The translations under genes were made by a program, and so were the position numbers. The notes beneath the pieces were generated by a model, which saw nothing but the letters and a program-made list of their open reading frames with translations, ran no database searches and had not been told where the DNA came from. Of a stretch of 64,000 nt of DNA, positions 38,930-42,952 are shown piece by piece. Source of the DNA: Parasitella parasitica NRRL 2501 (taxonomy: Eukaryota; Fungi; Mucoromycota); assembly GCA_025201805.1 (NCBI GenBank), contig MU619288.1, positions 132,068 through 196,067 on the forward strand. Direction: 5' to 3'. Every line of letters starts with the position of its first letter. Within the stretch, counting starts at the first letter, position 1.

Positions 38930-39798
38930 ATGGCTGAATATCTCGCTAGTATTTACGGCACAGAAAAGGACAAGTGAGTTAAATATAGTTGACAATATTG
39001 TTAACAGTTTTACTGACAATCTATATTCCTTCAATAGAGTCAACTGTTCATTTTATTTCAAGGTAAGTAATATTTTCTGTAAGTGTAGAAGGTAATTTAT
39101 TAAAAATGTATTTATCAGATTGGTGCCTGTCGCCATGGTGATCGTTGTTCCAGAAAGCATGTTAAACCCACATTTTCACAAACGCTTTTGATCGCCAACA
39201 TGTATAAAAATCCAGCACACGATCCAAATAACCACATGAACGAAACTCAACTCCAAAATGATTTTGATTTATTCTATGAAGATGTGTTTACGGAGCTTGC
39301 TAATTACGGTGAAATTGAAGAAATGGTTGTATGTGATAATGTGGGGGACCATTTAGTTGGTAATGTTTACTGTCAATTCCGTCTAGAAGAATCTGCTGGT
39401 AACGCAGTAACTAGCTTAAATAATCGATTTTACGCAGGTAATGTATCCGTTTTCTTGTTTACATCTCGTTCTTGTTATCTAATCTTTTCTGTGATAAAGG
39501 TCGACCATTGTATGCAGAATTATCACCAGTGACTGATTTCAGAGAAGCTTGTTGTAGACAGCATGAGATATCCGAATGTAATCGTGGTGGTTTTTGTAAT
39601 TTTATGCATTTGAAACATCCTTCTCGCCAATTACGAAGAGAATTATATGAAGGACAAAGATTGGACATAAGAGAGAAACGCAGAGAGGAAATGCGTCGTG
39701 AGGATGAAGAAAGAAGATCAAGAGATAGGGACTATCAACATGAGAGACCTGATTTCAAGGCTTCGCCTGAGAGATCTGATATCAAACAAGAGTATTAA
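38930..39798 (+). CDS. U2AF1: Splicing factor U2AF small subunit; multi-exon
   Basis: [37 protein letters not shown]; [17 protein letters not shown]; second zinc finger [20 protein letters not shown]. Confidence 0.97.
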
Positions 39799-39870: not shown

Positions 39871-42056
39871 TCAATACGCTTCACCATATTGTTTTCTATT
39901 AATGTCACGAGTATTTTGAAATGGCACGACTGAGTCGGTATGTGATTGTCGATCGTATAGTGAACTGGAGCATGAAGAATCACTTGAAAGTACATGATTA
40001 TGTTGCTTTGGAAGTGGAAGCAATTTAGGTACTCTTCCAATGATATTAGAATTTCTGCTTGTTTGTTGAATAATCTTGAAAAACTGCTTTTCATTGAAAT
40101 ATTTGAGAACTTGCCATGTAGGATTCAAAAAGGATAGCTTTCTTTCAAAGTATGAGAGTTTCTCTGTTTCCTGTTGTTAGAAATGAAATGTTTAATGCCA
40201 TTGTATTAACCCTTACGTTTTCCGATGCCCCCATTTGATCTGATCCCATGAAGGGTCTTGAGTGGAGGAGCTAGTAGTCCTTTTGCTCCTTGAACAATGG
40301 GAGGTTTACCTTTTTCGATTCGACATATATTTCTTGCTATGCAAACGCCTGCTAACGTTGCAGCATAAGCGGTCTTTTCTTCTTTTACATTTGTGGCATC
40401 TCCGCCAGCAAATACATGATTGTACTTCCAATGTTGCAATTGTAGCGTAGGCTTTACTTTGATCAAGCCATTTTTATCTAGAAATTCTTCTAGAGACAAT
40501 TCATTTATGCTCCTTTCAATAAACGCTGTATTGACTCTGACGCCTGTAGCCATAAAAATAGTGTAATCATGGCTGGAATAGATGCTCCCGCTTGATCCCG
40601 TGTAATGATAAACACCTTGTGTGGAATGAGCTTTCATTTTTTCATTCAATATGCTATTCACTCCAAGGCTCTTGAGAAACTTTTCGGCGTTTTTTCTTTG
40701 CTTGTCATCCCCTCTATATATAATTCTATCTCGAGCTTCTACCAAGGTAACCTTCTTTTTTGGAATTGAGGAATCAAATATTTTTTCGGCAATGGAGGCA
40801 GCTAACTCACAGCCTACTAAGCCAGCACCTATATGTAAACTGCATGAGTTTATCTTATTTCATACCTCATTCAATGAGCGTTTTACCTATTATTAGAATC
40901 TGTTTGGCCTTTCTGATTTTGTCAGCTATACTATTTAGCCCTGCTGCTCTGTATATGGTTGATGAATGACTGGATTTTAATTGTCCAGCATAAGAGCTGC
41001 CAGTAGCTATGACTAAATAATCAAAGCGAATCTAAAATCTGATCAATACTACTCGTTATTGTACTCAATCAAAACCTGAAGTACCTTTTCGCCATTCACT
41101 TTGACCCATTTAGAATCTTGGCATATACCTTCAGCCCACCCGATAATGATTTTTCCATTTTTTATATAAGTATCATGAGTAAATCGCAATGATGATGTCG
41201 TTTCAGGGTAGACAATTTTAGTTATGATATGAGGCGTATATTCAAGTGAATCTAGCTAACAGTTAGTGTATTATCTTAGCTATAAGGGGTAAATTTACCT
41301 TTTGTATCGATGAGAGTGACATGAAATAATGGCATAGGGTCCAAAATGGATGCCACTGTGAAGCCCTTTGAAATCATTATTAGCAGTCGATAAAACTTTG
41401 AATGTGTTCGCTTAATTACAGTAAAGCCTCCGCCAATAATGACTACTCGTTTCTGTGCAGAAGTAGCCGAAATACAGCTTAGTTTACTTTGTTTTGAACT
41501 GGCAGTAGCTAGTGGTGATGATAAGAATTCGTTTAACTTGGTCATCTAAGTATATTACGTTAATTAACTGGCATTTATCTTTTAATACAAGCTTACGAGC
41601 ATTGCTAATACTTCTTCTTTAGTTTCTTTCAGTATATCTAGTGCTTGTTCCCGAGTAAATGTCGCCCATTGTATAGTCAAGATCTTTGCTTTGACTAGTT
41701 TTTGTGTCTTGACATTTATTTCTAGTGGTGCATCCACAGCGATAAATGTATGATAGATACTGTGGGTAAATGGATAAATTTAGCTGTGGTTGTGATATGC
41801 TTAGGAGAAATATATACCGTTTAAACATCTCTTCCACATCTTCAGATGTCTTTACTAGATCATGCTGTAGCTGATCTATGGCCTCAATGAACAACAGATT
41901 TTCTTGGGCCCATGATTTTATCAAGTACGACTCGAATGAACTCAACAAAATCGGATCTTTCAATACTTGATGCAAACTGGTATCATTTTTTCCAACTAAT
42001 AGACTTTTCAAAGAATCTTTTGAGAGATTTCCTGTCTTGAGATCCATTTTTATCAT
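39871..42056 (-). CDS. RGS-domain / FSP1(AIFM2/AMID)-like FAD-NAD(P)H oxidoreductase fusion; about 8 exons
   Basis: RGS: VLKDPILLSSFESYLIKSWAQENLLFIEAI..IYHTFIAVDAPLEINV. Phase-0 intron 41546-41596 joins it to KRVVIIGGGFTG, FDYLVIATGSSY, IIGAGLVGCELAA, VFAGGD. Confidence 0.88.
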
Positions 42057-42952
42057 ATATTTGATAATGAATAGTGTAGGAAAAGAAAGAAGAATACCGA
42101 ATAGAAAACGATTTCAAAACTGAAACAGTTGTTAATTTTTTTTTTTTTTTTTTATGTTAAATCAAAGGTAAATTCTAAAGAGACTCATATTTTGGTTTAG
42201 TTTTCCCTTCATTTGTATAATAATAATTATTTTGTCAACAATAAAGAGATTACTGGCTCCAAGGCATTGTTTCTCTATTCAATGTATATACATCAATACA
42301 AAATTTGTTTTAAGGGAACTCAAATTGACAATCGACAATATAACCAGATCTATCAAAAATATATCTTTCCGCCAGCCAGTTTCCTATTTAAAACTACATT
42401 TGGAACCTTTTGCTTCTTTTCCCTTCATTAAAACCCAAACGCTGTGCATCACTGCTAAAACAATCAAAAATTAATTCCGTACAGTTCAAAGCATAATCTA
42501 CTATATTTATTAAGGTACTGAAGCTTATATGTTAAACCATGAAAACTTGCCATTCAACTAATCTACTAAATGGTTCATAATACTTTACGCTGTTCCTCTA
42601 AACCTTTTGGTTTTCAGCAGGCTGTCCCAGAATGGTCTATTTAGAGAAATTGCACGCTGCATTATTGCTATATCAAACTGTTGTGATTCTTTTCACAAGG
42701 CATGTAAAAAATTGAATAGACATATTAATGTTCTCTTCACTTGACTCATATTGACATCAAAGGTGATTAATAGCTACTGGATACACAACCATTGCGAGGT
42801 CCTCCTCTTGCGTTATTTGACCAATCATTCTTTCCAGTACTCTCCATCTTCATTGGTCAAGTGCCTTTCCAAAAGATGCGATTATCGCTTTAAATTCCCA
42901 GATTACATCTCGTTTGGACGTAAACACTTTGTTTTCTCGAGTATCAATTAAT

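Follow-up and report, generated by a model that had tools for sequence, protein, structure and literature searches.

Does the minus-strand locus at positions 42056-39871 encode a single protein in which an RGS domain is joined to a flavin oxidoreductase, or do two neighbouring genes lie here, and what might such a protein do? The question was raised by a sequence-only reading of a 64,000-nucleotide stretch of contig MU619288.1 from the fungus Parasitella parasitica NRRL 2501 (hereafter the window), AT-rich eukaryotic DNA with 37% GC and introns of about 50 nt. That reading proposed that one gene fuses an RGS domain to an FSP1/AIF-like flavoprotein. Our data indicate with high confidence that the locus is a single gene and a real RGS-flavoprotein fusion, the main product of which is a two-module protein of about 603 aa, composed of an R4/R12-like RGS domain, a linker of about 25 residues and an FAD/NAD(P)H oxidoreductase of the FSP1/AIFM2 type (NDH-2 superfamily) whose C-terminal segment is family-specific.

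A single gene encodes both modules

An eight-exon model on the minus strand accounts for the whole locus (Table 1), with 1812 nt of coding sequence, comprising 603 codons and a TGA at 39873-39871, and with introns of 47-58 nt that are all of the GT...AG type. The exons of the window were searched singly, and the full-length tests were run on the public P. parasitica protein P0082 and on database orthologues. The translation of exons 3-8 matches P0082 (469 aa) letter for letter. P0082 starts at the exon-3 ATG (41545, compared with 42056 in the full model) and leaves out 134 RGS-encoding codons; the public model at this locus is truncated, and the RGS exons are missing from it. Other public models of the family are apparently 5'-truncated as well (for instance P0014, P0038 and P0099), with the partial-RGS models P0057 and P0062 among them. 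A 64-nt intron 3 would shift the frame and was discarded in favour of a 54-nt intron, which matches P0082.

The two modules meet at a 51-nt phase-0 intron (41546-41596) between EEVLAML and MTKLNEFLSSP, exactly as the sequence-only reading had described it, and exon 3 continues in frame from 41545 to RVVIIGGGFT. The statement that this intron splits the last RGS helix was also borne out on the Mucor circinelloides orthologue P0077, in which a long helix (residues 113-139) crosses the exon junction at 131|132 in both the full-length and the N-terminal AlphaFold2 models.

Seven independent lines of evidence count toward fusion. Positional orthologues with both RGS and Pyr_redox_2 domains were found in M. 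circinelloides (P0077, 607 aa) and Thamnidium elegans (P0083, 603 aa), and the zf-CCCH neighbour that converges on the gene in the window adjoins both of these orthologues too, confirming the synteny. At the M. circinelloides locus L027, all eight exons of the gene are matched end to end, indicating that all seven intron positions are conserved. Against the M. circinelloides orthologue, the RGS exons have a ratio of nonsynonymous to synonymous substitution (dN/dS) of 0.136, compared with 0.068 in the enzyme core (dS about 1.2-1.6), and this purifying selection on the RGS exons indicates that they are not a decayed remnant. Two further paralogues in the genome, about 50% identical to this gene (C81:64570-66414, locus L023; C142:76151-77923, locus L022), have the same RGS-then-reductase order. 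All three copies carry a phase-0 intron after ML or FL codons, followed in the C81 and C142 paralogues by K-[LI]-x-E-F, and JGI itself models the C81 copy as fused (P0001, 686 aa), with an RGS score of 38.8 bits.

The remaining lines come from further members of the family. By direct translation, an uninterrupted open reading frame (ORF) of Piptocephalis tieghemiana (L026:2501-4045) contains both RGS (4e-10) and Pyr_redox_2 (3e-32), and the Logan contig L025 holds an intronless single ORF of 577 aa with both domains. The Fonticula gene was rejected as proof of this kind because an intron lies in the linker between its two domains. In many family members, P0001 included, the stretch from the RGS domain to the FAD (GGGF) motif is devoid of Met, so that the enzyme is not translatable alone in those members; the orthologues of Thamnidium, Pilaira and Helicostylum have R at the position of the exon-3 M of this gene. 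In addition, a Logan contig of 2601 nt from a Mucor lusitanicus-like organism (L029) contains none of the introns of the gene or of its convergent neighbour, showing that it is derived from spliced RNA, and it joins exons 1-2-3 in one frame (...EEVLAML-MTKLSDF...GGGFT). Together, the syntenic orthologues, the paralogues, the intronless ORFs, the Met-less members and contig L029 back the earlier view that this is one gene and not two neighbours.

Table 1. Positions of the RGS-flavoprotein gene and its parts in the window
Feature	Positions	Strand	Evidence
Whole coding region, RGS-flavoprotein gene	39871..42056	-	Own model; exons 3-8 equal P0082; eight exons one-to-one on L027
Exon 1: start codon, N-terminal tail, first RGS half including QENLLF	41818..42056	-	Pfam RGS E=0.003, profile positions 1-46; 65% identity to P0077
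E and N in exon 1	41903-41898	-	Match RGS4 E87/N88
Intron 1, inside RGS domain: 58 nt, GTATAT...CACAG, phase 2	41760..41817	-	Position kept in L027; missing from spliced Mucor contig L029
Exon 2: second RGS half, PLEINV, ends ...EEVLAML	41597..41759	-	78% identity to P0077; family alignment
E and N in exon 2	41722-41714	-	Match RGS4 E126/N128
Intron 2: 51 nt, phase 0, GTAAGC...TTAG	41546..41596	-	Same position in L027 and both paralogues; precisely removed in L029
Exon 3: opening ATG, TKLNEF end of last long RGS helix, linker, FAD strand/loop RVVIIGGGFT	41420..41545	-	P0082 start
Intron 3: 54 nt, phase 0	41366..41419	-	Matches P0082
Exon 4 (GFTVASILDPMPLFHVTLIDTK)	41299..41365	-	P0082, L027 mapping
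Exon 5	41085..41251	-	P0082, L027 mapping
Exon 6: ends ...QILII-G, first Gly of second GxGxxG motif	40887..41031	-	P0082, L027 mapping
Exon 7: NAD(P)H-binding AGLVGCELA, GGD motif, GVCIARNICR helix	40217..40828	-	Pyr_redox_2 2e-14, Pyr_redox 2e-5
Exon 8: conserved C-terminal segment (LSFLNPTWQVLKYFNEKQF), low-complexity tail, stop codon	39871..40163	-	P0082, family alignment
Approximate RGS domain span, about residues 28-145, broken by introns 1 and 2	41513..41975	-	P0077 Pfam match 25-142, offset of +3 residues

Several further observations concern the surroundings and the relatives of the gene. The convergent neighbour lies on the plus strand at about 39188-39798, ends at 39798, has a CCCH zinc-finger-like stretch and seems to encode a protein of the U2AF small-subunit type; in the Mucor RNA contig, the 3' ends of the RGS-reductase transcript and of this neighbour's transcript overlap. 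A run of about 17 A on the minus strand (42134-42150) lies about 80-95 nt ahead of the start codon at 42056, presumably in the 5' untranslated region or promoter. In the C81 copy exons 6-8 are merged into one 431-codon exon, and in the C142 copy a single exon holds the whole RGS domain through ...DML. P0001 and P0004, both labelled P. parasitica, share only 86% identity over a conserved protein, suggesting that the two sequenced strains of this name are quite divergent or that one of them is mislabelled.

The N-terminal module resembles GAP-type RGS domains but has an altered α8

Full-length members of the family score 30-46 bits against the Pfam RGS profile (PF00615), above its gathering cut-off of 23.9 bits. 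For the orthologue P0077 the score is 37.3 bits (E=4e-9) over residues 25-142, a match that runs across the exon 2/3 junction. Exon 1 of the window alone reaches 18.5 bits (E=0.003), which is under the cut-off because introns split the RGS domain. When a profile of 25 N-terminal regions of the family was compared with the PDB, it matched RGS10 at 1.4e-15 and RGS4 at 8e-7, and also RGS17, RGS2, RGS5, RGS8, GAIP and RGS7/9/16. The fold was assessed on P0077, which is 65-78% identical to the RGS exons of the window: the AlphaFold2 model of its residues 1-162 has nine helices and a pLDDT of 84.7, and the top Foldseek matches listed were all RGS or RGS-homology (RH) domains (TMt up to 0.83, root-mean-square deviation 2-3 Å), led by RGS4, RGS16, RGS9, RGS2 and RGS8. 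The N-terminal region thus matches the RGS profile, as had been expected from the sequence.

The sequence-only reading had further noted that the Gα-contact motifs ENLLF and EINV are kept and that the Asp and Arg of DSxPRF are absent. Both statements hold. ENLLF is encoded at 41903-41889 and EINV at 41722-41711, and the counterpart of RGS4 D-S-Y-R-R-F is T-K-L-N-E-F, the α7/α8 contact residues (RGS4 D163, S164 and R167) not being matched in the window gene. Over an alignment of 25 family members, the counterparts of E87 and E126 are each kept in 22 and those of N88 and N128 each in 20; D163 is kept in only three, S164 is replaced by Lys in 18, and R167 is replaced by Glu or Asp in 23. The conservation of the first four residues indicates that the α3-α4 and α5-α6 contact loops resemble those of a working GTPase-activating protein (GAP). 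The α8 surface has a different but conserved chemistry, which would fit either an altered Gα specificity or packing against the enzyme. The full-length AlphaFold2 model of P0077 has a predicted TM-score (pTM) of 0.78, which hints at a fixed arrangement of RGS module and enzyme.

The C-terminal module is an FSP1-type flavoenzyme

Exon 7 matches the Pfam profile Pyr_redox_2 at E=2e-14, with a nested Pyr_redox match at 2e-5, and the full-length orthologue P0077 matches Pyr_redox_2 at 8.5e-30 over profile positions 2-287 of 291. Profile and fold matches both reveal two dinucleotide-binding Rossmann domains. Among solved structures, FSP1 is the best match by sequence (chicken, human and ancestral FSP1/AIFM2, E from 1e-18 to 3e-16) and also by fold (Foldseek 5.6e-21, TMt 0.73), followed by NDH-2, sulfide:quinone reductase and AIF, which agrees with the initial description of an FSP1/AIF-like flavoprotein. 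The cofactor motifs are intact: IIGGGFTGF for FAD, IIGAGLVGCELA with its Glu for NAD(P)H, and the GD motif FAGGDAT all align with those of FSP1 and are nearly invariant in the family, and the Glu of AGLVGCELA in exon 7 aligns with the Glu of the FSP1 GVEMA motif. Only the fused clade has the GVCIARNICR helix, which is missing from unfused relatives.

In animals, an N-myristoyl anchor targets FSP1 to membranes. The protein described here begins with MIKMDLK..., with no Gly2 for myristoylation, and the RGS domain sits at this end.

Distribution and age of the fusion

The fused proteins form a clade of their own in a maximum-likelihood tree of the enzyme part, separated with an SH-aLRT of 99 from unfused relatives; the tree was built without animal FSP1, and its outgroup consisted of unfused relatives of about 345-390 aa (prokaryotic or metagenomic sequences and one lycophyte). 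Within it, three Mucorales paralogue clades (that of this gene, C81 and C142) each extend across several families and each retain the RGS domain. Outside the Mucorales clades, fused members occur in Umbelopsis, Jimgerdemannia (Endogonales), Piptocephalis (Zoopagales) and Fonticula. Further fused members are a second Fonticula paralogue (1120 aa), a Syncephalis protein (1080 aa), environmental proteins of 593 and 643 aa, and a Logan-contig protein of 1146 aa (P0167) in which a DEP domain (residues 462-526) is inserted after the NAD(P)H-binding domain. In word-limited searches, which give no proof of absence, no fused members were seen in Dikarya, chytrids, Mortierellomycotina or Glomeromycotina. 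The few full-length entries of the clade that apparently lack an RGS domain begin directly at the FAD motif and seem to be truncated models. In the ESM Atlas, 98% of a 59-member Mucoromycota cluster have the RGS domain. The nearest unfused relatives of the enzyme are the 'AIF homologue' proteins of dictyostelids, Acanthamoeba and plants, together with prokaryotic relatives of about 345 aa.

The fusion has therefore been kept across three old Mucorales paralogue lineages and in Umbelopsis, Endogonales, Zoopagales and Fonticula. In the genome as a whole, profile searches found at least 16 RGS loci and at least 12 distinct Gα loci above the cut-off, indicating that the heterotrimeric G-protein toolkit is strongly expanded.

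A possible coupling of Gα signalling to a membrane reductase

Taken as a whole, the explanation that we incline to, if only slightly, is that a single gene produces a two-module protein which acts through a Gα-coupled mechanism. The Gα-coupled reductase mechanism, taken by itself, is a candidate that we hold tentatively and with somewhat more doubt than confidence. According to it, the RGS module would dock on GTP-bound, lipid-anchored Gα, and this docking would place or regulate a reductase of membrane quinone (or of another lipophilic acceptor) at active sites of G-protein signalling. The RGS module would in this way substitute for the N-myristoyl anchor of animal FSP1 and would probably also speed up GTP hydrolysis, and the protein would act as an RGS-containing effector enzyme with a redox output. 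The hints for this are the retention of the RGS4 E87/N88/E126/N128 counterparts in 20-22 of the 25 members, the lack of an N-terminal Gly, the pTM of 0.78 for the full-length model, the presence of at least 12 Gα and at least 16 RGS loci in the genome, and the DEP domain of P0167, which is another module of G-protein signalling. An alternative offered by the sequence-only reading is that the redox state might tune GAP activity.

Several points weigh against the preferred explanation. Gα binding, GAP activity, membrane location and the substrate of the enzyme are all predictions made from sequence. Across the family, S-x-x-R-F of α8 is systematically replaced by K-x-x-E/D-F, a change that could abolish or retarget Gα binding, and a minority of members are without the N88 or N128 equivalent. 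At the level of the transcript, shorter isoforms are annotated at the M. circinelloides locus, the Mucor contig L029 uses a downstream acceptor of intron 3 (L029:495-520), and the public Parasitella annotation begins at the exon-3 ATG; the RGS module and the enzyme may each also be made alone, beside the fusion.

The changed α8 motif gives rise to the main rival, in which the N-terminal module is a degenerate RGS-homology domain that works independently of Gα as an intramolecular regulator, a dimerisation domain or a scaffold for other partners (cf. axin, AKAPs, GRKs and some sorting nexins), and the protein simply amounts to an FSP1/AIF-type reductase that carries an uncommon helical domain at its N-terminus. 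The family-wide K-x-x-E/D-F, with its reversal of charge at RGS4 R167 in 23 of the 25 members, is what such a domain might show, as are the loss of the N128 or N88 equivalent in some members, the hint of fixed RGS-enzyme packing from the pTM and the presence of the RGS-like domains of SNX25 and PDZ-RhoGEF among the matches. However, the counterparts of E87, N88, E126 and N128 have been kept in 80-88% of members over very long divergence, the top matches in sequence as well as in fold are to genuine GAP-type RGS domains (RGS10, 17, 2, 4, 16 and 8) rather than to RH domains, and one variant adds a DEP domain. We regard a Gα-independent RGS module as rather unlikely.

Splicing and isoforms

The points concerning transcripts bear on a second rival, according to which the modules are mainly separate proteins at this locus and the fused form is minor. 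An RGS-only product would arise through retention of intron 2 or through an alternative acceptor of intron 3, and translation from the exon-3 ATG would yield a 469-aa enzyme. Exon 3 indeed opens exactly with this ATG, where P0082 starts, and an in-frame TAA lies four codons into intron 2, where an RGS-only product would terminate upon retention. Intron 3 could also be spliced to another acceptor, 10 nt further downstream (AG at 41357-41356), the exon start at 41365 being productive and that at 41355 frame-shifted; use of the downstream acceptor in L029 leads to a TAG immediately after GGGFT. This double acceptor may mean regulated unproductive splicing or a route to an RGS-only product. Four products are annotated at the M. 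circinelloides locus PS15m_007341, a 612-aa fusion and proteins of 478, 520 and 513 aa. The 478-aa isoform begins with ML-MTKL and includes the last two codons of exon 2, the N-terminus of the 520-aa isoform would be read from exon 2 in another frame and then from a retained intron 2, and the 513-aa isoform appears to retain intron 7. If uncoupled products were made, they would explain why the gene caller chose the exon-3 ATG.

Nevertheless, the structure of the locus speaks against mainly separate modules. Only 37 nt lie between the read-through stop and the ATG, leaving no room for a terminator and a promoter. Because intron 2 splits the last long RGS helix, an RGS-only product with this intron retained would be without the end of the helix. 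The 478-aa isoform includes codons of exon 2 and thus comes from a transcript spliced across intron 2. Furthermore, R stands in place of the exon-3 M in Thamnidium, Pilaira and Helicostylum, no Met precedes the FAD motif in other members, and intronless fused ORFs are known (Piptocephalis and L025). Mainly separate products are, in our judgement, very improbable. A third possibility sees in the RGS exons either a remnant in decay or a chance ORF that precedes an ordinary AIF-like gene; it could appeal to the sub-threshold score of exon 1 and to the omission of the RGS exons from the public annotation, but is effectively refuted by two open exons with 65-78% identity to the Mucor orthologue and a dN/dS of 0.136, by canonical splice sites at conserved positions and by the match of the family profile to RGS10 at 1.4e-15.

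Implications

The retention of the fusion in three Mucorales paralogue lineages and in Zoopagales, Endogonales and Fonticula is strong gene-fusion evidence for a functional connection of Gα signalling with a membrane NAD(P)H oxidoreductase. Much work has been done on RGS proteins and on FSP1/AIF-type reductases alike, and we found no link between them described. The preferred explanation, a two-module protein coupled to Gα, offers a testable hypothesis for the role of part of the unusually large Gα/RGS repertoire of Mucorales, and suggests how an FSP1-like enzyme might be targeted without myristoylation.

A more far-reaching reading combines three proposals and is improbable as a combination. 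First, the family would represent an unrecognised class of heterotrimeric G-protein effectors, in which a quinone reductase docked on Gα-GTP couples receptors to membrane-quinone redox and to an FSP1-like, ferroptosis-type defence against lipid peroxidation in early-diverging fungi. Second, the fusion would have a single origin before the split of Fonticula and Fungi, with later loss in Dikarya. Third, alternative splicing at introns 2 and 3 would set the ratio of fused to uncoupled modules. If true, the effector class would take in agents of mucormycosis.

Comparison with known systems

The sequence-only reading knew of no characterised example of this architecture. That part of the claim stands: we found no description of an RGS-oxidoreductase architecture in the full-text literature covered, which includes de Mendoza et al. 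2014 (PMC3971589) and has Anantharaman et al. 2011 outside its coverage. The architecture itself, however, is neither rare nor unseen in databases. Dozens of entries carry RGS together with the reductase, most of them named 'RGS domain-containing protein', one Phycomyces entry being called 'alternative NADP(H) dehydrogenase' and one Mucor entry 'apoptosis inducing factor'. It is an old architecture, widespread in early-diverging fungi, and does not represent a new fold or principle.

On the enzyme side, FSP1/AIFM2 (AMID), the ferroptosis suppressor protein 1 of animals and an NAD(P)H:quinone oxidoreductase, shares the two-Rossmann Pyr_redox_2 core, the FAD motif GGGFxG, the NAD(P)H motif GxGxxG with its Glu, and the GD motif. 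Different from FSP1, with which identity is only 22-25%, the present protein has an RGS domain of about 145 residues in place of the myristoylation signal, contains the GVCIARNICR helix, and has a different and longer C-terminal region with a disordered tail. The unfused AIF homologues are 34-46% identical over the core but are without the RGS domain, starting about 8 residues before the FAD motif. Type II NADH dehydrogenases (Ndi1 and bacterial NDH-2), the next-best structural matches after FSP1, are likewise without it.

On the RGS side, the R4/R12/RZ-type domains (RGS10, 17, 2, 4, 16 and 8) belong to the same profile family and have the same helical fold, with the counterparts of E87, N88, E126 and N128 conserved. 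Compared with them, the Trp of ENxxFW is replaced here (ENLLFIE), the α8 motif D-S-x-x-R-F has become x-K-x-x-E/D-F, and the domain is joined to a redox enzyme. The canonical fungal RGS proteins, namely the DEP-DEP-RGS type (Sst2/FlbA), PXA-RGS-PX, the transmembrane RGS type (TM-RGS) and the G-protein-coupled receptor-RGS type (class VI), are also RGS regulators and part of an expanded fungal G-protein signalling, but none of these types carries an oxidoreductase; the variant P0167 resembles the DEP-RGS types in having a DEP domain. RGS-RhoGEFs (p115, PDZ-RhoGEF, LARG and the Entamoeba RGS-RhoGEF) and GRK2, in which an RGS/RH domain tethers a catalytic domain to activated Gα, offer a functional analogy only. 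Their RGS-like domains, as far as the RGS-RhoGEF type is concerned, are weaker matches of the RGS module of this family, which is closer to the GAP type than to RH, and the output here is that of a flavin oxidoreductase rather than of a guanine-nucleotide exchange factor or a kinase.

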